From the IMG/VR virus record IMGVR_UViG_3300027985_001318, positions 62,001 to 126,000 of that record: 64,000 nt of DNA; one strand, given 5' to 3'. The notes under the pieces are model-generated. The model ran no database searches. It was not told the origin of the DNA and saw only the letters and a list, made by a program, of their open reading frames with translations. Made by a program: the position numbers and the translations under genes. Shown here one piece after another: positions 4,655 to 26,799 of the stretch (positions within the stretch are counted from its first letter, which is position 1; each line of letters starts with the position of its first letter).

Positions 4655-4942
4655 ATGGAAAAAACCAAGGTGCTGATGTCCAGAGACAATCCTGAAGGTT
4701 ATAAACTCGAGGAGCTGCTGCAGTACATAGCGGCCGATATCGAGATCAAATCCAAGGATCTCTCCGACAAAATCGCCACAGCAGATCAGACCAGTGCACA
4801 GACCAAGGTAATGTCCAAGGTACTGGAGAACAACAATGCGATCGTAATGTTGCTCCAGAGCGCACTGAAAGCTCAAAACGATTCGTTGCGTGCCCTGGAT
4901 ACTTTGGGTCCTAACAAAGGCCCTGCTGCTCCCAGAGTCTAA
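4655..4942 (+). CDS. small helical/coiled-coil hypothetical protein
   Basis: AAGGA RBS, first gene of phuZ operon. Confidence 0.7.
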   Translation: MEKTKVLMSRDNPEGYKLEELLQYIAADIEIKSKDLSDKIATADQTSAQTKVMSKVLENNNAIVMLLQSALKAQNDSLRALDTLGPNKGPAAPRV

Positions 4943-4951
4943 GGAACCAAA

Positions 4952-6001
4952 ATGACTGCAAAGAAACCAACTATCGGCGCCGCTGGCGAGCTGCAACCGC
5001 CGACCGGCGATAACGCCGAAAAGAAAGTTCGGATTTATGCTTGTGGTGGCTGTGGTATTAATATAGCCAATAAGCTGGAATTCGAAACCGAACAATTCTC
5101 CGGTCGTGGTTTGCCGGATATCGTTCGGCTGGATACCAGCCGCAGTAATCTGCGCACTGGCGTTGAATACAAAAACCTTTTCCTGATCGATGGTAAGGAC
5201 GGTGCCGGGAAGATTCGTCGTGAAAACTACCCGGAAATCGCCGCAGCCATGGGTCAGATCGTCTTGGAACACGGGCCTCTTGATCTGAGCATCGTACTCT
5301 TCTCCGCCTCTGGTGGTACCGGGTCCGTGTTTGGACCGCTGCTCATAGGTGAGCTGCTCAAGAAGTCCGCAAGTGTGGTTGGCGTGATGATCGGTAGTAC
5401 CGAGTCTGCCATTACGGCCGAGAACACTCTCAACACCTTCAAATCGCTGGACGGGATCGTAAAGACCAGTCAATGCGGCGCCGCGTTGTTCTACGAGGAG
5501 AATCCTCGTGACAGCGGCCGTGGAAGCGTGGATGCGACTGTTCTATCGGTACTCAACGCCCTACTGGTAATGGGCTCCGGCAACCACTTTGGCCTGGACA
5601 CCAAAGATGTGGGGAATTTCCTCCGCTTTGATCTCGGGGCCCGTGTTCCACCCCAACTTGCGCTGCTGGATATTATCTCCTCGGAAGAGCAGATTGCCGG
5701 CCTGCGTGAGCGGAAGCTCGATCGCCCTCTGTCGGTATTGAGCATCCATGCGTCTGATGACTTCGTTCCGCTGCCGGTATCTTATTCTTACCTGGCCGAG
5801 GGCTGTTTCCTTGATGGTAAACAGAACAACGCAGCTTCAGTGCATTTCCTGATCGACAATGCCGAACTTCCGGCATTGGTTAAACGTCTGGATGGTATCG
5901 TTGGCGAGTATGCTGCCGTTGCTAATTCCAGGCAACAGCCCACCGCGCTTTTCGGTAGCGGTGGCGCAAGTAAGGCCGATGACCTAGGGATGGTGTTGTG
6001 A
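4952..6001 (+). CDS. phuZ: phage tubulin PhuZ (spindle)
   Basis: ACGGCGINI, DTSRSN, DGAGK, SASGGTGS tubulin/FtsZ motifs; acidic C-tail DDLGMVL. Confidence 0.95.
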   Translation: MTAKKPTIGAAGELQPPTGDNAEKKVRIYACGGCGINIANKLEFETEQFSGRGLPDIVRLDTSRSNLRTGVEYKNLFLIDGKDGAGKIRRENYPEIAAAMGQIVLEHGPLDLSIVLFSASGGTGSVFGPLLIGELLKKSASVVGVMIGSTESAITAENTLNTFKSLDGIVKTSQCGAALFYEENPRDSGRGSVDATVLSVLNALLVMGSGNHFGLDTKDVGNFLRFDLGARVPPQLALLDIISSEEQIAGLRERKLDRPLSVLSIHASDDFVPLPVSYSYLAEGCFLDGKQNNAASVHFLIDNAELPALVKRLDGIVGEYAAVANSRQQPTALFGSGGASKADDLGMVL

Positions 6002-6189
6002 TGGGTGGGGAATTCGTGTGCGATAAATGCGGGTGCGTGGATCTGGTCGGGTTAATGACGAACCCATCGGTCTTCCAATGCAGTGAATGCAGTACCGGCA
6101 AATGGCATGGTCAGTTCCCCAAACGTCAGTACAATCCTGAAGTCGACATTGTCGTGAACCGCCCTAATGGGCTAGGAATGGAGGGTTGA
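6001..6189 (+). CDS. small Zn-ribbon protein
   Basis: CDKC...CSEC pairs; TGATG overlap with phuZ stop. Confidence 0.7.
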   Translation: MGGEFVCDKCGCVDLVGLMTNPSVFQCSECSTGKWHGQFPKRQYNPEVDIVVNRPNGLGMEG

Positions 6190-6191
6190 TC

Positions 6192-6702
6192 TGAGCACTA
6201 GCTCTGCGTCAAAGAGCCAGTTCTACGGATTCCTCACAGTAAGCGCTTTGTTGTTGGCATGGCACCTGTTGACACACTCGGCTACATCCGAGTTCCTTCA
6301 GCTGCCCCTCGCGTATGGTGTACTGATCAGCACCAGCCAGGACTATCTGTCAATAACTAAGTCTAGGACCCTCATTGAGTACCAACACCCAACAGGTATC
6401 TTTGAGGGAAGTCGCGCCGCACTATCACCTGGCCACACCGCCGGACGTCGCGTCTGCCTTAGCGTAGGGTTCTGGATCCTAAGAGCTAAGTCCTAGATAT
6501 TGAATAAAGTCGGCGCTTATTGTATGGGTTCTAGGACCGCTCTAAAAACAATCTGGGCTTAGTTAATCGCAAGGTTAATGAAAGCAAAAAAATCAGTCGC
6601 TTAATTGCGACCTAAAGGAATAGCGATCAAAAGTTTAGTACACCGAGCACCTCACTGAGCGTGACGCTGAGACTTTTCACCGATCGAGTAAATGAGCAAC
6701 CC
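6192..6702 (+). ncRNA. candidate large structured non-coding RNA
   Basis: No credible ORF; more than 10 helices including long-range and crossing ones; G-U pairs fix the + strand; ends at a strong terminator. Confidence 0.55.
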
Positions 6703-6734
6703 AAAAAGTCCAGGGCAGTGCCCTGGACTTTTTT
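6703..6734 (+). terminator. intrinsic terminator
   Basis: AAAAAGTCCAGGGC-AGT-GCCCTGGACTTTTTT. Confidence 0.85.
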
Positions 6735-6795
6735 CAGCTTATTCTTTTAATGAGCTTCCTGAGTCTCTCAAACGCTCTCTATTAAAATGAAATAG

Positions 6796-6822
6796 AAAGG
6801 TAGGGGTTACCCCTACCTTTTT
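6796..6822 (+). terminator. intrinsic terminator
   Basis: AAAGGTAGGGG-TTA-CCCCTACCTTTTT. Confidence 0.7.
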
Positions 6823-6888
6823 AACGCAATGGCTTAGAAACGTTTTTAAGTACGCATTTAACCAATGTATGGAAGCAAGCACGTTTTG

Positions 6889-6908
6889 GACCTATATTAC
6901 CTTAATGA
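6889..6908 (+). promoter_or_regulatory. early (virion RNAP) promoter
   Basis: gaccTATATTACcttaatga; exact phiKZ early motif TATATTAC. Confidence 0.75.
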
Positions 6909-6930
6909 TAGGTAACGATAGGATATCTTC

Positions 6931-7275
6931 ATGAATCAATTCATAGTGGTTATAACTCTAGCCGAAGAGTTGGCTGAAATAATCGAACAGTTACCGTTCC
7001 AAATTAACGGGATTGAAAGCAGAAAGCTTAAAAGATTACTGGAGGATGTAATAGTAGGTTCGTTGAGGGTTCGTGGATTGCTTGAGGCAAGCCCAACGGA
7101 AACGGACTGTTTCAATACACCAGATTATTACCTTCTAGTAAACGCTTTGTCTCTTAATGAAAGACTAGGTAGATCGCTGTATCGACAAACTGCCCAGATT
7201 GCAACCAGATTTGGTTACGATGGCTGGAAAGTAAGACTGGAATTTTTCGATAAACTTTACATCCAGAAGGAATAA
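6931..7275 (+). CDS. small protein, array member 1
   Basis: AGGA RBS; N-terminal strand, helices, C-terminal beta hairpin. Confidence 0.75.
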   Translation: MNQFIVVITLAEELAEIIEQLPFQINGIESRKLKRLLEDVIVGSLRVRGLLEASPTETDCFNTPDYYLLVNALSLNERLGRSLYRQTAQIATRFGYDGWKVRLEFFDKLYIQKE

Positions 7276-7280
7276 GGATA

Positions 7281-7799
7281 ATGATTAACTTTGGCTATCT
7301 ACCTAATGCCCAATGTTTTGCTCTTAATCGCCTAATCTCCGAAACCACAGCCGGTCTTATTAACATGGCTACAGCTCTGGAGTTCAATCCTGGGCAACCT
7401 CTGGCTATTTGGTTTAATCGTCAGATCGTAACCGAAGTACTCAAGTCGCTAGCCGACGACTACGTCGATAACTTCAGCGTTTACGCTGCTGATTATTTCC
7501 AAGGTAAAGAAAAAGTCATTTCGGCACATCAGAAGCTAGATGAAAAGATTAGCGTGTTGTTTCCTGAAACAGCCCTTGTTTCCGAAACACAGAAAAATCT
7601 GATACGAGATCAACTTAGCTACGTTTTATCTGACGCCATCGATCAGATTTATGGTTTCGTATTATCTACTCTACTGGTACCTACTTGGCATGTCTGGGAA
7701 GTGCGTTTGATTGGCACTACGTTGATCCTGTCTTGCGGCATGGATTATCGGGTTTTGGAATATTATCGACTAACTGGACAGCCTGTGCCGCTCGAATAG
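7281..7799 (+). CDS. small protein, array member 2 (phiKZ gp42-like)
   Basis: TAAGGA RBS; recalled C-terminal motif W.VW.V..IG..LIL..G.DYR..EY. Confidence 0.7.
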   Translation: MINFGYLPNAQCFALNRLISETTAGLINMATALEFNPGQPLAIWFNRQIVTEVLKSLADDYVDNFSVYAADYFQGKEKVISAHQKLDEKISVLFPETALVSETQKNLIRDQLSYVLSDAIDQIYGFVLSTLLVPTWHVWEVRLIGTTLILSCGMDYRVLEYYRLTGQPVPLE

Positions 7800-7807
7800 A
7801 GGCAGCC

Positions 7808-8173
7808 ATGACCTATTTTGTTAGAAGCATTTTTGATCAAGAAATAGACGACATCAGATATTTCTTGGTAAAGAAAAACAACCAAAGCTTCGAGTTAGAA
7901 AACACCAACTTATTTGCTGGTTCTTTGATTGAATACAGACTAGAGATCCGAATCAATGGCTCTTCGATAAGAGACTATTGGGAATCGGAGACACCACAAG
8001 AGTCTCTAGAAAGATTTGGTTTCTCTAGTTTGGAGATCGAAGAAATCTTCTCTTTTATTGACAGTCGGCTCGACCTGTTCTTTAAACGGATAGGACTAGA
8101 TCCAAAGAGAATGGAGATCGTCAATTTCAAAACAGAAGCCGGTAAGTTCTCAGTTATGTTTAAATCCCAATAA
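7808..8173 (+). CDS. small protein, array member 3
   Basis: ATG 7808 after GAGG RBS (track start 7685 overlaps the previous gene). Confidence 0.7.
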   Translation: MTYFVRSIFDQEIDDIRYFLVKKNNQSFELENTNLFAGSLIEYRLEIRINGSSIRDYWESETPQESLERFGFSSLEIEEIFSFIDSRLDLFFKRIGLDPKRMEIVNFKTEAGKFSVMFKSQ

Positions 8174-8188
8174 GCCGGGAGGTGAGCT

Positions 8189-8674
8189 ATGAATAAAACA
8201 AATGGTCAGCTCACTATCCTTCGATATAACTTGGAAGAAGAATACCGGGCAGTCGAAGACATTATACGGAAAAACGGCTTCGATGGGATTTATCCGCCAG
8301 GATTCCTATTGGAGCTAGTTGTTTCCTGTTACGGTGGTGAGCAAGTACCGTTCTTTAAGGAATTCGAGGAAATCTTCGGTGAGAAATTTATCTCGGTGGT
8401 CGATAGCTTTAAAGTCGAACTTGGACCAAGTATTTGGGAGACGGCCGATCTACCTGGGCTTTATCAAGACCTAGTGATGGACCTATATCCAAGAATTGTC
8501 GAAAAATTGAGACCTTTTTCAAATGGCTTTTATGACGATCAACATGTTGAGGTCGATTCTTCAACACCACGGTATACACTGATCTACTTGGAGTTGAAAG
8601 ATGAAGAAATCAAACTCGATCATAGTAGCCTTGAAGCTATCTGGAGTAGTGAGAGATATCAATCTTCAATATAG
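8189..8674 (+). CDS. small acidic protein, array member 4
   Basis: GGAGGT RBS. Confidence 0.75.
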   Translation: MNKTNGQLTILRYNLEEEYRAVEDIIRKNGFDGIYPPGFLLELVVSCYGGEQVPFFKEFEEIFGEKFISVVDSFKVELGPSIWETADLPGLYQDLVMDLYPRIVEKLRPFSNGFYDDQHVEVDSSTPRYTLIYLELKDEEIKLDHSSLEAIWSSERYQSSI

Positions 8675-9020
8675 GGAATCTAGTTTTATAGGTCTGAATA
8701 TAAACAAACTGATCGAAACTTTTTTAAGCGGAGTAGAGTTCCTAGAGAGACGAAACGGAACGATCATTAGTTGTCGAAACAGAAACGAGCTAGAAAACCT
8801 AATCGAATATCATTTTGGCAAAATAGACCTACAGAATATCATTGAGGATATAGTCAATTATTTATCTGAAGATATCTACGACTACCTGAATAGATTCTTG
8901 GGTGAAAACTTCCATACGCGTTACGATATCTCAGCAATACGGTATTCGACAGACGGAGAAATCCTTTTTCTAATGGTTACCATCAAACCCTTAAAGTTTA
9001 CGTTAGGAACGATAATGTAA
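8601..9020 (+). CDS. small protein, array member 5
   Basis: GGAG RBS inside the previous gene; 74-nt overlap. Confidence 0.7.
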   Translation: MKKSNSIIVALKLSGVVRDINLQYRESSFIGLNINKLIETFLSGVEFLERRNGTIISCRNRNELENLIEYHFGKIDLQNIIEDIVNYLSEDIYDYLNRFLGENFHTRYDISAIRYSTDGEILFLMVTIKPLKFTLGTIM

Positions 9021-9047
9021 ACAGAGAACAGATCCCAGGAGCTCAGA

Positions 9048-9434
9048 ATGAAACAACAAAACTTTGGAATTGATCTTACCGATTGGATCAACAGCGTCAA
9101 TACGATGCTGATCAATGATCAGCAGCTCGCCAAAAAGATTATTGAAATAATCCCCATGGCGGTTATTGACGGGCTGTTCAACGTACCGGAGGAAACAGTG
9201 CTTCAATTTATCGCTATGCGATTCCCTGAAGCGATGCCGGATAGTTATCAGTCCGTTGCAATTATTGCACTAAAGGCACTGTTGAACAACAAACTCTACA
9301 TCGAGTTTTCCACTATCGACAAAATGGAAAACGCTCTGCATCCGATCGGTTATAAAGGCAATGTTTTGATGTTTATTTGCCAACCGGCCTCCTGGGCTTT
9401 CATTCGACCCGCCGAGCTCAAACAACTCGGCTAA
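9048..9434 (+). CDS. small protein, array member 6
   Basis: AGGAG RBS. Confidence 0.75.
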   Translation: MKQQNFGIDLTDWINSVNTMLINDQQLAKKIIEIIPMAVIDGLFNVPEETVLQFIAMRFPEAMPDSYQSVAIIALKALLNNKLYIEFSTIDKMENALHPIGYKGNVLMFICQPASWAFIRPAELKQLG

Positions 9435-9442
9435 GGAAAATT

Positions 9443-10006
9443 ATGCTGGCTGTAGCCATTAGGCCTAATTCTCTATCGGTCATTTATCGCATTTTCAAAA
9501 GCCTGATCTCCCCAGACTCTCCCGTAGTTCAACAGGAGGTTCTGGGGGTTTTTAATGACCATATTCGGCTTTTCATGGATCCGGATTTCTTAACCGGCGA
9601 AGAATGCTATGAGTCTAGCGATACTTCATTTCTAAACGAAACTTTCGTTGAAGAGATGTTAGTAGAGCTATTCGACGAAATAGTTAACCAGTTGGCTAAG
9701 ATCGATTTGATTGCAGTTGGTCGTGAGTTAATCGTCTCGAAGATAACCGTAATCAACGATACCACAGCTTTGGTCGAATATTATTTTAAGGAGATCAGCA
9801 ATGACCGCAATACTGTCGCAAGTACCAATCGGCTCGACAGTTTCCTTCGAAACGTACGCCCCTCAGATCATCGGAGCCGTAATATCGGACGCCGTGGTGT
9901 TGTCACATTTGGACGCAGAAAGCGTAAGAATGCTCGGTGGGGATCCGTACAGCAAACACGCCCAGATTTATCCGCTACTCCCGAGTGGTACGGTAGACGA
10001 CGCTGA
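9443..10006 (+). CDS. small protein, array member 7
   Basis: TAAGGA RBS, ATG 9443; C-terminus overlaps the next gene by 206 nt. Confidence 0.65.
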   Translation: MLAVAIRPNSLSVIYRIFKSLISPDSPVVQQEVLGVFNDHIRLFMDPDFLTGEECYESSDTSFLNETFVEEMLVELFDEIVNQLAKIDLIAVGRELIVSKITVINDTTALVEYYFKEISNDRNTVASTNRLDSFLRNVRPSDHRSRNIGRRGVVTFGRRKRKNARWGSVQQTRPDLSATPEWYGRRR

Positions 10007-10211
10007 GGCATATACCTACCTCAAACTCCGTTTGGTATCTAACCAAACGGTTTTCATTGGGTTGAACTGGATCCGTGAAGATACCATAGAGGCTACTCAA
10101 CGACATCGTGCTGAGGTGGTGGTTGAGGACGTTGGGCCGAGCGATGTTGAAAACATCCGCTTGGCTTTGGTTAGCAACGGGTTTACTAAACTCAGTATCA
10201 AACTGTCTTAA
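9801..10211 (+). CDS. conserved protein (phiKZ gp49-like, SH3-like)
   Basis: TAAGGAG RBS; recalled motifs HAQIYPLLP..T.DD, IGLNWI; directly upstream of DNA polymerase. Confidence 0.75.
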   Translation: MTAILSQVPIGSTVSFETYAPQIIGAVISDAVVLSHLDAESVRMLGGDPYSKHAQIYPLLPSGTVDDAEAYTYLKLRLVSNQTVFIGLNWIREDTIEATQRHRAEVVVEDVGPSDVENIRLALVSNGFTKLSIKLS

Positions 10212-10243
10212 AAAAAGTAGGGGGGTTGCCCCTACTTTTTTTT
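10210..10243 (+). terminator. intrinsic terminator
   Basis: GTAGGGG..CCCCTAC followed by T8. Confidence 0.75.
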
Positions 10244-13919: not shown

Positions 13920-13993
13920 TGCGCAAGGAAACAGCATCGTCTTTAGCTAAAGACTTCTTTTAATGTAAGAAAAAATGTTCTAAGGAGAACAAC

Positions 13994-15967
13994 ATGGCAG
14001 TACATGACAACGGCCAAAGCAACCAAGGCCAGCCCCAGCAACCGACTGGCGGTCAGCCGCAACAGCAACAACAGACCCAACAACAAGGACCGGCTCAAAT
14101 GTCCCAACAGACTACCAACTTCAACTTCAATCCCGCGGCCGGTGCCGGCGACTTCAACCTGGACGACCTCATCGGTTCCGGTATCAGTCCCCTGGCCCCC
14201 ATCGCCGACAGCGCCAAGCTGACCGAACTGCAACAAGCCCTCCGTGAAGTGCTGTCCAAGGACGGCGGTAAGACTCTCCTGCCCGGTTTCGCTATCGACA
14301 TCGTCGATGCTGCCACTGCTCGCACCAAGGGTTCTGCGGTCCTGGTTTCTCACGCCACTCAAGTGGCCGGTGTTACCAACATCGCCGTGATGACCTGTAT
14401 CCTGGAAGCCTCTGTTGCCAACCAGTCCAAGGTGCAGTACGTTTTCAACCAACGTACCTATGAACTGGAGCCGACCGCCGGCACCAGCTGGACTTCCGCG
14501 TTCTGGAACCGTGTCGAGAACCGCATCCGCGATCAGTACGGCCGTGGCGATAACGTCAAGGTGTTCGACGTAGGTGTTATCTCTGTTCCGTTCGACTTCG
14601 ACGTCGAAGACAAGCAACATGTCCACAACCTGGCCCGGATCACTTCCAGCGCCTGCGCCATGTGCTCCGCTTCCCTGACCGGCCGTAGCGTTCGCCCCAT
14701 GAACCTGAGCGCCCAGATGCTGAAGCACAACCTCCAGCTGCAAAGCCGGGTTGACTTCACTACCAAGGATGCCAAGGATGCCGTAGGCCGTCCCGTTCGT
14801 GCCGATGTGGTTATCTCCACCTTCCTGGGCAACCAGCAACAGCAACAAGTGTACCAAGGTTACGTCGATCAAGGCCAGGACTCCGTTCCGCTGGTCAATC
14901 TGTCCGGTTATGTTGATGTCAACTACGTTGGGCCGACCCAGACCACCAACGGTGTGCAGACCCTGAACAGCACTCAGCACTACATGGCCGAGTTCGTCAT
15001 GACCGGTTTCGAAACCCGTCTGTACGACATGACCATGGAACGCCTGATGTTCATCACTGCTACCGCCTCCATGATGGATCGCGAGTTCACCTGGGCCCAC
15101 GCCATGCTGCCGAAGCCGCGGCCGGCTGATGCCAAGGGTAAGGATATCCGTGACATCGGTATCCTGGGTATCGAACAGGACTTCTTCGGCACCGGCGCCC
15201 CCAAGCGCATCGAATTCGGTGTCAACAAGGATAGCAACCAGAAGGTGGTGGAAATCTCCAACTTCCTGGCGACCCTGTTCTACAAGGAGCTGATCATCAG
15301 TATCGACTGCGATACCGTTGGCCCCAACTCCTACCTGACCAACGATCTGCTGCTGGCCGCCGGCAAGGGTGAGGCTTCCGTAGCCGCTCAATCCCGGATC
15401 CTGAACGCCTGTAACCAGCTCACCAACGGCGCTTTCGCTCCGCTGTGGGCACAGTCTGGTCTGCGTCCCGATCAGATCATCTACAACCGTAACCTGACCC
15501 TGCCGCGTAGCCAGTACGTCGACAACTCCGGTACCCTGCGTTCCGGCGCCGACCTGGACTACATCGCTCGACTGAACCTGCTGGAAAAGGATCTGCAATC
15601 CTACAACGAGTTCACTCGTACCATGGAAGATCCCAACCTGCCGAGCGAAGTCAAGCTGGCTACCCAAGAAGCTATGCTGAAGATGCTGTGGCCGACCGCC
15701 GTCGTCACTGGCGAACTGCATCGCCTGACCTGGGAACCCAAGATGTTGCAAGTCCTGGTCAAGGCCATGGAAAACGCCGGTGTGGCAATCCGTCCGGAAG
15801 GTCAACGCATCTCCGCGTGGGGCAATACCGCCATCCGTAGCAACCAAGCCCTGATGTCCTACGGTAACTTCGGGCTGTCCGCTGGCCTGTTCAACTACGG
15901 CAACAACGTAGGTGCCATGGCCGGTCCCGGTGGCTTCGGTGGTCGTATCTCCAGCTTCGGGATGTAA
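13994..15967 (+). CDS. chmA: chimallin, major phage nuclear shell protein
   Basis: 657 aa; immediately upstream of nvRNAP beta'N; motifs D.VGRPVRAD, LSGYVD, RDIG.L, D.DY; strong codon bias; Q-rich N- and G/F-rich C-terminus. Confidence 0.88.
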   Translation: MAVHDNGQSNQGQPQQPTGGQPQQQQQTQQQGPAQMSQQTTNFNFNPAAGAGDFNLDDLIGSGISPLAPIADSAKLTELQQALREVLSKDGGKTLLPGFAIDIVDAATARTKGSAVLVSHATQVAGVTNIAVMTCILEASVANQSKVQYVFNQRTYELEPTAGTSWTSAFWNRVENRIRDQYGRGDNVKVFDVGVISVPFDFDVEDKQHVHNLARITSSACAMCSASLTGRSVRPMNLSAQMLKHNLQLQSRVDFTTKDAKDAVGRPVRADVVISTFLGNQQQQQVYQGYVDQGQDSVPLVNLSGYVDVNYVGPTQTTNGVQTLNSTQHYMAEFVMTGFETRLYDMTMERLMFITATASMMDREFTWAHAMLPKPRPADAKGKDIRDIGILGIEQDFFGTGAPKRIEFGVNKDSNQKVVEISNFLATLFYKELIISIDCDTVGPNSYLTNDLLLAAGKGEASVAAQSRILNACNQLTNGAFAPLWAQSGLRPDQIIYNRNLTLPRSQYVDNSGTLRSGADLDYIARLNLLEKDLQSYNEFTRTMEDPNLPSEVKLATQEAMLKMLWPTAVVTGELHRLTWEPKMLQVLVKAMENAGVAIRPEGQRISAWGNTAIRSNQALMSYGNFGLSAGLFNYGNNVGAMAGPGGFGGRISSFGM

Positions 15968-15992
15968 GAGTCTCCGGTAACGGAAAAGACGG

Positions 15993-16024
15993 AAAGAGGG
16001 AGGCATTAGCCTCCCTCTTTTTTT
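15993..16024 (+). terminator. intrinsic terminator
   Basis: GAGGGAGGC-ATTA-GCCTCCCTC followed by T7. Confidence 0.85.
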
Positions 16025-16050
16025 ATCAATGAATCCGGAGTACTTGGCAG

Positions 16051-17358
16051 ATGAGCGCATACGTTCCTTATATCTCCAAACACGATCAATTAGAGGAGGA
16101 ATATGTCAGCGGTTTACATCTTGATATCGTTGATTTCGATTTGATGGCTGCGATTAGTTCGCGCCCTCCAGTCTACGCCAACGATCTTGATGTTAACGAA
16201 ATCGAGTCAAGACGCAAACTTCAGGATGAGCTCTACACCCACTACGAGTCGGACACCATAGACAACATCCCCGTTTGTAGCTGCCAGAAATACAAAGGCG
16301 CTCGCTATTACGGGATAGTCTGTGATCGTTGCGGTTCAGAGGTAATGATTCCCTCGGAACGGCCAATAGAATCCGCTCTTTGGATCCGCGCCCCAGAAGG
16401 CGTTCCTGGTCTGATAAACCCATTAGTTTACAGTAACTTGGTAGCGACCTTCAAGAAAAACGGCGTAAGTATCATTGAGTGGTTGATCGACCCGTATTAC
16501 AAGCCCCCGAAAAATAACAGCGGCCAAGTAATTGCTCGACTGGAAGCTTTAGGGGTGCAGCGTGGCTTGAAGAACTTCATCTTCAACTTCGACCAAATCA
16601 TCACCATCCTCACAGCTAATACGTTGTTCAGCAACAAAAAGAAAGCGCCTCTGCAACGTTTCAAGGAATGGATCGACCGTAACAGAGATCGTCTGTTCCC
16701 CCAAGCTTTGCCGATACCATCCAAGCTTTCCTTCATTCTGGAAGACTTGGCGGTTGGTCGCTTCGCTGACCACAACATGGCTGATGCTCTGGATGCGGTA
16801 AGTACCATAGCGTCACTGAACTCTGGCATAACGGCACCTTCACAGCAACAACGTGAAAGTCGTGCAGTGAAAGCCTGTGCTCAACTGGCCTCTTTCTACG
16901 AAGGTCAATGTCGTAGTAGCCTTGGTGATAAACCTGGGCTGTTTAGACGCCACGTTTTTGGTACAAGACCAGCAATGAGTTTCCGGGCAGTAATCACCTC
17001 GCTGTCGGCTAACCACCGATATGATGAGATGCACTTGCCTTGGTCGCTCTCTGTGTCACTCTTCAGGGTCCATATCTACAACTACTTGTTGAAGATGGGA
17101 CTTTCTCCACTGGAATGTCGTAAACAAATCGCTGAAGCGATCATCAAATTTGATCCGGTAATTTACGATATCCTGAACAACCTTATTTCCACCCACAGCT
17201 CCGGTAAAGGTTGGCCTTCGTTCTTGCAACGAAACCCTTCACTGAAGCGTTTGTCTGCTCAACGTCTCTTCATTACCAAAATCAAAACAGATGTCGAAGA
17301 TTACACGATTTCGTTCTCTGTTCTTGTACTTAAGGGAATGAACGCTGACTTTGACGGT
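16051..17358 (+). CDS. non-virion RNAP beta'-N subunit (gp55-like), exon 1
   Basis: Zn ribbon CSC...CDRC, KPGLFRRHVFG.R, RAVI, RNPSL, ends NADFDG. Confidence 0.9.
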
Positions 17359-23580: not shown

Positions 23581-23610
23581 TCTGTAACGACACGATCCAA
23601 TAAAAACAAA

Positions 23611-23630
23611 GACCTATATCACTATTGTGG
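23611..23630 (+). promoter_or_regulatory. early promoter
   Basis: gaccTATATCACtattgtgg. Confidence 0.65.
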
Positions 23631-25194: not shown

Positions 25195-26799
25195 ATGTTT
25201 GGCAATAATGACATGTACGGTGTGACGCTGGAGATAGAAGAGTTGCTGCTCTTCCAGACCGGCACCTACAACGACCAGTATCGTCACGACTACACCGTAA
25301 ATCAACAAGGTCACGGCAATATGCTGATGGCCGCTTCCGAACAACTGAACGAAGTTACACATGAAGGTAAAAACCTTAACCCTGTCACACTGGCGCAGTT
25401 AGGTACTAACATCATTGCGCCGCGCGCTCAAGTAACCCATAACGAGTTCGTCACTATCCCGTTTGGTTGGGGACAGGAACGTTTCTTGTTCATGATGAAA
25501 GTTCGCGCCCAGCAAGCTATGTCAAACATAGTTAACTACTATTACCTCACCGGCTACACGGACAACAACGAGATCAGTTTGGTTGGAAACATTTCCCCTA
25601 ATCTGAAATTCTACATCAACAACTCCGTTCGTGTCCGCGAAGTAATAAATGCTATCAATGGAGCAAACGTATCTACGCTCCAAGGCGTGCAACTTTCCCA
25701 GGTGTTGTTAGGTACCCACAACCCAGGCGTAAGTTCCATGGGTCCGGCAGCTAACAATGAGTTCCAAATGCTGCCGAGCACAATGGCTGAAATGGCTGGT
25801 ACTTTGGCTTGTTCTCAGCAAGGTATTGCCCAGCCGACAGGTCAGTACGGTGGAATGGGTGGAGTGCCGCCACAGTACAACGGTCCGGCCATGATCGAAA
25901 CAACCCCGATGTTCCATAACGGTGCGGTACTCCAGACCCGCGATAACAACATGCCGAACCGCTGGTTGTCTCGGTTCTTGACTGGTTTTAGCGTTGGTGT
26001 TGGTGACACTTACAACGATACCACTGACAGTAACATGTTCAGTGCTATGGCTGGGGCAATGGCGGAACCTTTGTTCCAAAACGATCAAGTTCTGGCCATG
26101 TTCAAGCGTCATACATCGTTCGGTGATCCAAATTCAGGCTTCATTAGCTGGGCCGAACTCTGTAACATGAGTCCTGGTTTGGATAATCGCACCAAGGTTA
26201 ACCGGGTTAGTAACCAAGATCTTCACTACCTGCAACAAGTGAACGGTAGTGAAGCCTGGCATGCCGCGACCCGCAATGCCTGGGCTGCTTCGCTGATCTC
26301 TCAGATCTTGCCGTCTATCATGGCTCCGCTGATGTTGATGCGGGTTACTTTCACGGTAACTAACATGGTTGTTGGCGGCGGGTTGCAGTTCCAAATCCAC
26401 AGTAACACCACAGACCCTTATGTGATTACTCCGAAGTCATTCATGTCTTCGAACGTCGATATCAGCGCGTATCTTCAACAATTCCAGGCTCGAGTGCTGG
26501 CCGAACTGATGCCCTCAGTTCTCCATAGCCCAGATTGGCCGGTAAGTATCGTTGTCGATGCTCAATTGACCAGAGACATAGTGATCAATTTGTCTGTGGG
26601 CGGTGAACCAACTGAGAAGTTCGTGTTCCCGACATTTGCCGACCATCGTCTGGCTCCGGTAATGACCAACAACTACGCCAACGTACAAAACATGTCAGCT
26701 GACCTGGTAACGTTGGCGAACCAAGTAATTTCAGCCCCGTTAGGGACTTCTTCAGTGAATATGGGAGGCTATAGTGGCACAAGTTTTGGAACTGTATAA
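25195..26799 (+). CDS. picA: phage nuclear protein import factor PicA/Imp1 (gp69-like)
   Basis: Between gp68 and gp70; TGTYNDQ.R, I..GW...RF.F, GYTD, PTFAD...P patterns. Confidence 0.72.
   Translation: MFGNNDMYGVTLEIEELLLFQTGTYNDQYRHDYTVNQQGHGNMLMAASEQLNEVTHEGKNLNPVTLAQLGTNIIAPRAQVTHNEFVTIPFGWGQERFLFMMKVRAQQAMSNIVNYYYLTGYTDNNEISLVGNISPNLKFYINNSVRVREVINAINGANVSTLQGVQLSQVLLGTHNPGVSSMGPAANNEFQMLPSTMAEMAGTLACSQQGIAQPTGQYGGMGGVPPQYNGPAMIETTPMFHNGAVLQTRDNNMPNRWLSRFLTGFSVGVGDTYNDTTDSNMFSAMAGAMAEPLFQNDQVLAMFKRHTSFGDPNSGFISWAELCNMSPGLDNRTKVNRVSNQDLHYLQQVNGSEAWHAATRNAWAASLISQILPSIMAPLMLMRVTFTVTNMVVGGGLQFQIHSNTTDPYVITPKSFMSSNVDISAYLQQFQARVLAELMPSVLHSPDWPVSIVVDAQLTRDIVINLSVGGEPTEKFVFPTFADHRLAPVMTNNYANVQNMSADLVTLANQVISAPLGTSSVNMGGYSGTSFGTV

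Follow-up and report, generated by a model that had tools for sequence, protein, structure and literature searches.

Seven small genes in the phuZ-gp49 slot of an uncultured chimallivirus: a candidate early operon with a possible role in import into the phage nucleus

The IMG/VR virus record IMGVR_UViG_3300027985_001318 contains, within the 64,000 nucleotides analysed here (bases 62001-126000 of the record, hereafter the window), seven consecutive plus-strand open reading frames (ORFs) of 114 to 187 amino acids (aa), which we call o1 to o7. They lie between phuZ, which encodes the phage tubulin, and a gene for an SH3DP protein homologous to gp49 of phage phiKZ. The reading that we prefer, at a probability of about 35%, is that o1-o7 form an early operon in this phuZ-gp49 slot, that their products represent an old and diverged fold specific to chimalliviruses, and that, by analogy with phiKZ, they may serve as client-specific import modules. 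According to this model, the injected virion RNA polymerase would read the promoter of the unit early, and the seven proteins would all have a small alpha/beta protein-binding fold, confined to chimalliviruses, from whose other members they separated long ago and strongly. The fold would open with a strand at the N-terminus, run through three or four helices and close with a hairpin, and its only studied members would be Imp2 (gp47) and Imp4 (gp48) of phiKZ. Each array protein would bind one or a few clients, likely DNA replication, recombination or topology enzymes, and pass them to the Imp1/PicA import machinery. The few specificity factors that have been described for the choice of cargo by the shell of the phage nucleus all come from phiKZ. 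If the fold is shared family-wide, candidate adaptors would be at hand in every chimallivirus and the evolution of import specificity would become directly testable; if it is not, o1-o7 would be an early operon like others, set apart only by its unusual degree of conservation.

The record is 223,650 bp long, carries direct terminal repeats and was judged complete. Because the window encodes PhuZ (4952-6001, approximately 35% identical to PhuZ of Eowyn-like phages), SH3DP, a divergent family B DNA polymerase (PF20286; 10300-12483), chimallin (chmA; 13994-15967) and a homolog of PHIKZ069 (Imp1/PicA; 25195-26799), its source is an uncultured, complete 224-kb chimallivirus, that is, a nucleus-forming jumbo phage. 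No close cultured relative was found, as the block had zero megablast matches in a collection of 50,697 phage records. PhuZ used as a single query detected no near relative in IMG/VR. The public runs that contain the sequence are all DNA metagenomes labelled hydrothermal vent.

The array and its transcription unit

Relatives of the array were found by searches with SH3DP and with an o4 profile. They comprise a 14.9-kb wastewater scaffold (L014), a 17-kb Logan contig (L032) and a 1-kb fragment (L035). All seven genes are present both in L014 and in L032, in identical order and at nearly equal lengths, and L035 carries part of the set. The seven consecutive ORFs, which an earlier note made from the sequence had singled out, are real genes, because colinear orthologs are present in L014 and L032 and the ratio of nonsynonymous to synonymous substitution rates (dN/dS) is low. 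In near-identical variants of L014, which do not cover o1 and o2, the ratio for o3-o7 lies at 0.06-0.23, as against 0.01-0.02 for the polymerase gene. Between lineages, amino acid identity is 26-49% for the array proteins, as compared with 70-77% for PhuZ, 73-75% for SH3DP and 76-83% for the DNA polymerase. The array is thus under purifying selection, as measured by dN/dS for o3-o7, and evolves three to four times faster than the neighbouring genes. An SH3DP alignment searched against IMG/VR and the JGI metagenomes retrieved only Xoo-sp14-like phages, FBKp24-like phages and near-copies of L014. A word-indexed protein search with o4 returned o4 alone, and an exhaustive o4 profile search yielded two extra lineages; three long multi-stretch matches of the profile search were treated as spurious.

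The first gene, o1 (6931-7275; 114 aa, acidic), has no Pfam or PHROG match, and its orthologs are also 114 aa long (38% identity in L014 and 28% in L032). It is followed by o2 (7281-7799; 172 aa), which corresponds to the N-terminal domain of a protein family described below, and by o3 (7808-8173; 121 aa, acidic), which belongs to no family and has orthologs in L014, L032 and, in part, L035 with 31-37% identity. The best conserved member is o4 (8189-8674; 161 aa, pI 4.4), which has a predicted core of a strand and four helices and is present in four lineages at 38-48% identity. The first 74 nucleotides (nt) of o5 (8601-9020; 139 aa) overlap the end of o4. The orthologs of o6 (9048-9434; 128 aa) are 35-36% identical, and this gene is the most variable between close variants. 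The last gene, o7 (9443-10006; 187 aa), encodes an acidic core of about 120 aa, across which the orthologs are 39-49% identical, and an Arg-rich tail. All seven proteins are acidic, with isoelectric points (pI) of 4.4-5.7 when only the core of o7 is considered; the pI listed for the o7 core by itself is 4.2. The variability of o6 takes the form of a local hot spot: L030 (1507-1902) and L014 (9253-9648) are 87.6% identical in nucleotide sequence and differ by 20 amino acid changes (dN/dS 0.23), and the adjoining genes are 95-99% identical. Recombination with a more distant variant is a possible cause.

The gaps between the genes are 5-27 nt, except at two overlaps. The o4/o5 overlap (8601-8674) measures 74 nt in the window and 56-74 nt in the relatives. 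The N-terminal stretch of o5 and the C-terminus of o4 are both conserved, in separate frames, in four lineages, and the overlap is without any nucleotide change across the L014 variants. The second overlap joins o7 to the gene for SH3DP (9801-10211, plus strand), the final 206 nt of o7 (9801-10006) being inside the SH3DP gene in another frame. This overlap (150-206 nt) and the resulting tail are present in the window, L014 and L032. The tail, of 41-67 Arg-rich residues with a pI of 12, arises where the o7 frame continues into the SH3DP gene, the start of which is conserved. A sequencing or assembly error behind the overlaps was ruled out, as both recur in independent assemblies. A frameshift fusion of o7 with SH3DP was also considered, and nothing requires it. 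The SH3DP protein itself matches PF20287 (E = 2.1e-32; 111.7 bits against a gathering cut-off of 25) and phrog_3235 (E = 1.1e-31), and its gene adjoins that of the divergent family B polymerase, which together assign it to the SH3DP family.

A promoter-like element, TTTTGGACC-TATATTAC-C, is located on the plus strand at 6883-6901, with the TATATTAC core at 6893-6900. The earlier note had placed the seven ORFs behind one promoter. The octamer does lie 31 nt before the o1 start codon and is conserved; the unit, however, has to be extended by an eighth gene, that of SH3DP. By itself, the octamer shows no enrichment in the window (4 copies, as against 1.2 expected). Of an extended motif, in which a T run precedes ACC-TATAT[TC]AC (TTT..ACC-TATAT[TC]AC), the genome has about ten copies on the plus strand and a single one on the minus strand, and the copies are mostly intergenic. 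They include window positions 23608-23615 and genome positions 128428, 137883, 155330, 168999, 176404, 187489 and 212919, and they provide a first map of the probable early transcription units of this phage. Upstream of o1, the motif is kept in L014 and L032 as TATATCAC, and the 150 nt before o1 are among the few stretches here that can be aligned as DNA between lineages.

In 13 reference chimalliviruses, a motif of this class is located upstream of the array or of chmA. It heads the equivalent array in phiKZ, 201phi2-1, PhiPA3, PS119XW, Eowyn, PCH45, FBKp24 and 2050HW and is located upstream of chmA in seven phages; in the window, a one-mismatch copy is found before chmA. TATATTAC is the promoter sequence reported for phiKZ, with longer related forms for 201phi2-1 and EL (PMC7058600), and phiKZ has 32 AT-rich early promoters that are read by the virion polymerase (PMC10914365). 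The element upstream of o1 consists of a T-rich stretch followed by a TATATTAC-type core, as expected of the early class to which the earlier note had assigned it, and the promoter class suggests that the unit is transcribed early. A scan for sigma-70-type promoters gave matches at chance level. At the stop codon of the SH3DP gene there is a hairpin with a 14-pair stem and a T run that resembles an intrinsic terminator (10210-10242, plus strand). The upstream unit is closed by two hairpins, and a terminator-like hairpin with an 11-pair stem that closes it before the promoter (6796-6820) is kept in L014 and L032. The region from 6883 to 10242 therefore has the layout of one transcription unit, apparently consisting of the promoter, o1-o7, the SH3DP gene and the terminator, and it ends 90 nt upstream of the polymerase gene.

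The slot occupied by the array is a conserved feature of chimallivirus genomes. In all 13 of the reference chimalliviruses examined, phuZ is followed by an array of small plus-strand genes, the SH3DP gene (gp49) and the DNA polymerase gene, and in most of them a reverse-strand gene and then chmA come next. The reference arrays contain 5-11 genes encoding very rapidly evolving proteins of about 100-190 aa, nearly all of which are annotated as hypothetical, and 66 of the 107 array proteins are singletons at E < 1e-3. The correspondence with the phiKZ interval between phuZ and gp49, and the presence of two import factors in that interval, had been stated correctly in the earlier note, which misnamed the factors as Imp4 and Imp5 for gp47 and gp48. 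In phiKZ, orf47 is Imp2, orf48 is Imp4, and Imp5 is orf287, encoded outside the block. Imp2 and Imp4 are needed for the import of Nlp1 and TopA fusions, and neither gene tolerates transposon insertions.

Sequence relationships and predicted structures

The earlier note had described the pairwise identity of the seven proteins as low and had proposed a diversified paralog family. The identity among them is indeed undetectable, and neither sequence nor profile comparisons support a paralog family; further copies of the array proteins elsewhere in the genome were not found. The seven are separate families with one-to-one orthologs, and therefore any common origin would be ancient rather than the result of recent diversification.

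Only o2 has detectable relatives in the arrays of other phages. It matches phrog_14023 (E = 4.6e-6) and, by hmmsearch, phiKZ gp43 (4.7e-8), with HHalign probabilities of 96.9% and 81.6%. The phmmer and hmmsearch matches include phiKZ gp43, 201phi2-1 gp75 and proteins of PS119XW, Xoo-sp14 and Eowyn. From these similarities we conclude that o2 is a member of the phiKZ gp43/201phi2-1 gp75 family (phrog_14023). It is a short form, covering only positions 70-149 of the 344 in the profile, and a shorter form is also present in Eowyn, FBKp24, PCH45, 2050HW and Xoo-sp14. The family members of phiKZ-like phages are 340-357 aa long (357 aa in phiKZ gp43). Within the present lineages, o2 has 172 aa in the window and in L032, and the L014 ortholog (7215-8003) has 262 aa owing to an extra C-terminus; at least one loss of the C-terminal part has occurred in this family. 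For the cluster containing gp47 (Imp2), the best match among the array profiles was again o2, with an HHalign probability of 4.7% over 114 colinear columns, and the others scored lower. With the o7 profile, the gp48/gp80 cluster was outside the top five HHalign and hmmsearch matches, and the best HHalign probability for any cluster was 3.9%.

AlphaFold2 models were made for two of the seven proteins, o4 (from a five-sequence alignment) and residues 1-130 of o7 (from a four-sequence alignment). The o4 model has a predicted local distance difference test score (pLDDT) of 67.8 and a predicted template modelling score (pTM) of 0.64, with residues 10-115 at pLDDT 76-93. It consists of a strand (8-14), helices at 16-28, 37-46, 57-78, 81-85 and 88-113, and a C-terminal part of low confidence that contains a strand at 129-135. 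The o7 core model (pLDDT 75.5, pTM 0.68) has the order strand, helix, helix, short helix, helix, strand, strand, with the first strand at residues 2-6, helices at 11-22, 30-45 and 67-87, the short helix at 62-65 and a hairpin formed by 94-103 and 109-117. The two models thus present the same order of elements: each opens with a strand at the N-terminus, continues with three or four helices and closes with strands at the C-terminus. The architecture that had been proposed for most of the set, an initial hydrophobic strand followed by helices and a final hairpin, is borne out in these two models as far as the initial strands of both and the hairpin of o7 are concerned; for o4, the C-terminal strand is predicted with low confidence. 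The models point to a common fold that may extend to all seven proteins, and an ancient, highly diverged fold family across the array is a plausible interpretation.

We then consider the neighbours of the models in structure space. The top 50 Foldseek targets of o4 and of o7 in BFVD are mostly uncharacterised chimallivirus proteins of 100-290 aa, with probabilities up to 1.0 and template modelling (TM) scores up to 0.5-0.65, and 17 targets are common to both lists. Their source phages are Psa21, Phabio, Noxifer, EL, PhiPA3, 201phi2-1, PS119XW, SL2, Eowyn, FBKp24, Ea35-70, Desertfox, RisingSun, PhiEaH1, Goslar, RSL2, RSF1, RP12 and RP31. Targets were assigned to genes by the printed gene number or by organism and length. 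Assigned in this way, several are encoded in the same slot as o1-o7: PhiPA3 gp044 and gp039, whose annotations note similarity to phiKZ gp47 and gp43, respectively; 201phi2-1 gp79 (gp47-like) and gp80 (placed in the gp48 family by our clustering); three proteins of Eowyn (147, 116 and 123 aa) and two of Ea35-70 (127 and 100 aa), in both phages including the product of the gene that directly precedes SH3DP; and proteins of FBKp24 (167 aa), PS119XW (264 aa) and Goslar (325 aa). The FBKp24 member of the o2-like family is among the targets.

For o7, the structural neighbours include the families of gp48 (Imp4) and gp47 (Imp2). On the gp48 side, o7 matched B3FK55 of 201phi2-1 (128 aa; taken to be gp80 from its length and the order of the accessions) with E = 0.07, a probability of 0.91 and a TM score of 0.47, both structures being predictions. 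For the positional equivalents of o7, likewise predicted on both sides, the probability was 1.0 in Ea35-70 (TM 0.50/0.62) and 0.82 in Eowyn. On the gp47 (Imp2) side, o7 matched 201phi2-1 gp79 (probability 0.57, query-normalised TM 0.31), a 178-aa protein of SL2 (probability 0.60, TM 0.40) and the 264-aa protein of PS119XW (probability 0.57), and o4 matched PhiPA3 gp044 with a probability of 0.14. Nothing comparable to either model was found among the 2.3 million cellular fold clusters of AFDB or in the PDB, and the cellular cluster lists were without taxonomic or size pattern (best probability 0.11 for o4). In a shape search of the ESM Atlas with o7, TM scores did not exceed 0.44, and trigger-factor N-domain clusters came up repeatedly at about 0.42; the ESM Atlas model of o4 (pLDDT 0.36) was too poor for use. 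The co-folding with the PicA homolog proposed in the earlier note was run for the o7 core. PicA itself folded poorly in it, and the outcome, no answer, speaks neither for nor against binding.

Possible functions of the array

The proposal that o1-o7 are import modules of a common fold draws on the slot, the promoter class and the structural neighbours of o4 and o7, and the import role itself is suggested by analogy with Imp2 and Imp4. Several observations weigh against it. Pairwise blastp and phmmer comparisons of o1-o7 are at noise level, HHalign probabilities are 1.5% or less for all 21 pairs (with profiles of 3-5 sequences) and below 6% against the Imp2 and Imp4 families, and a comparison of real with reversed array proteins of other phages showed only a slight excess in score (pooled p = 0.01). 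Both models rest on alignments of four or five sequences and are of medium confidence, the C-terminal third of o4 being below pLDDT 50; the Foldseek E values are weak (0.002-1), the TM scores to the Imp families are 0.27-0.47, and for most BFVD targets the gene was assigned from nothing more than organism and length. Moreover, Imp2 and Imp4 have been reported as restricted to Pseudomonas phages, no RNA runs were found among the runs containing the sequence, which are all DNA metagenomes, and co-transcription with SH3DP beside the polymerase gene would fit a role in replication equally well.

One could envision a different and somewhat less likely scenario, in which o1-o7 are a host-takeover or anti-defence set, that is, seven independent early proteins, each of which binds a different host factor and inhibits or redirects it, without any link to import. 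The targets could be defence systems, nucleases, proteases or components of transcription and translation, as for the early arrays of many lytic phages. The early-type promoter, the small acidic proteins without enzymatic domains, the fast evolution relative to the flanks, the hot spot in o6 and the variation in slot content between phage genera are all consistent with this scenario. An arms-race set, however, would be expected to gain and lose genes, whereas all seven are conserved strictly one-to-one and in the same order despite 26-49% identity, and purifying selection acts on o3-o7 (dN/dS of 0.23 or less). Furthermore, the relatives come from differing sample types (wastewater-labelled records, as compared with vent metagenomes for the window), and the only slot members that have been tested, those of phiKZ, act in trafficking internal to the phage.

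The preferred reading can also be extended to the whole group: the phuZ-gp49 slot of all chimalliviruses would hold one ancient fold superfamily, no longer recognisable from sequence, which would constitute the cargo-specificity repertoire of nuclear import, with a fixed set in each lineage (seven in this one) and a functional o7 tail. We regard this extension as doubtful. If it is true, Imp2 and Imp4 would not be peculiar to Pseudomonas phages, as the adaptor family to which both belong would be universal.

An alternative that concerns origin and not function is that the seven are unrelated orphans without common ancestry, strand-helices-hairpin being a common fold at about 120 aa, and that the chimallivirus-rich Foldseek lists reflect shared composition and size. 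The noise-level sequence and profile comparisons, the weak E values, TM scores mostly of 0.3-0.55 and the shallow alignments behind the models would be explained in this way. In keeping with this alternative, the hydrophobic N-terminal stretch is common in the genome, being present in 44% of its small ORFs and in six of the seven array proteins (a crude test with a marginal result). We think that this alternative is unlikely, given that the same queries match nothing similar in the cellular fold clusters, that 17 of the 50 top viral targets are common to o4 and o7, and that several targets are positional equivalents of the queries in other phages.

Least probable is an accessory module of replication, in which o1-o7 and SH3DP would be replisome subunits or chaperones that are made in fixed proportions from one coupled operon and work with the adjacent polymerase, possibly as a single multi-subunit complex: the shared unit with SH3DP (a domain named after its association with phage DNA polymerases), the 90 nt to the polymerase gene, the very tight spacing with two conserved overlaps suggestive of translational coupling and the gene order invariant in three lineages are in its favour, but the subunits of a replisome normally evolve more slowly than most other proteins of a phage and the array is the fastest in the region, the number (5-11) and families of array genes vary between chimalliviruses in which SH3DP and the polymerase are constant, and SH3DP has been reported as non-essential in PCH45.

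The phuZ-gp49 slot and two of its members in phiKZ were already known. In the literature that could be searched, no fold-level family spanning the arrays of distant chimalliviruses has been described, and neither has the seven-gene set or its conserved overlaps.

Neighbouring features and comparison with known systems

Several features of the surrounding sequence were recorded. A noncoding element of about 190 nt (6560-6735 in the window, 6395-6590 in L014 and 4480-4690 in L032) is conserved in the three lineages, in which nearby genes cannot be aligned as DNA. Its consensus fold has compensatory changes in 15 of 40 pairs and an intrinsic terminator at the end; it has no Rfam match and is a candidate small RNA of the phage. 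When the array region was scanned for Rfam families and tRNAs, there were no matches. A 63-aa zinc-ribbon ORF (5998-6189) overlaps the phuZ stop codon and is 62-64% identical in L014 and L032. Between the zinc-ribbon gene and o1, L032 carries a 629-aa chemoreceptor-like gene (4722-6611; Cache and MCPsignal domains), and L014 retains a 36-aa remnant of a chemoreceptor-like C-terminus (approximately 6610-6720; E = 5e-4); the corresponding position in the window (6190-6930) is just 740 nt of noncoding DNA. The chimallin gene has a G+C content of 58%, as compared with about 45% in its surroundings, and a 705-aa open frame on the opposite strand runs across it (13943-16060) and is probably spurious.

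The nearest counterpart of o1-o7 is the gp43-gp48 block of phiKZ (in which phuZ is gp39), which has the same slot, orientation, flanking genes and promoter class. Its proteins are in a similar size range (119-178 aa, plus gp43), gp43 is the sequence homolog of o2, and gp48 occupies the position of o7 immediately before the SH3DP gene. The two blocks also differ. Sequence similarity is detectable for o2 alone, which is without the C-terminal half of phiKZ gp43; the window has seven genes, none of them on the opposite strand within the block, and phiKZ has six; and phiKZ has neither the o4/o5 overlap nor the o7/SH3DP overlap and its basic tail, gp48 ending 35 nt before gp49. The function of Imp2 and Imp4 is known from phiKZ genetics only. 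The arrays of Eowyn (gp074-084), RAY (gp211-218), Goslar (gp235-242), PCH45, FBKp24, Xoo-sp14 and others are located in the same slot and are tightly packed, and several of their proteins are structural neighbours of the o4 or o7 models. Almost every genus, however, has its own number of genes and its own sequence families in the array. A more general likeness would be to the early clusters of other lytic phages, for instance the small host-takeover proteins of T4 or T7, which, like o1-o7, are short, acidic and fast-evolving, lack enzymatic domains and are encoded downstream of a promoter of early type. Unlike the T4 and T7 early clusters, however, o1-o7 are fixed in number and order across diverged lineages, and at least two members of the array are predicted to have a lineage-restricted fold.

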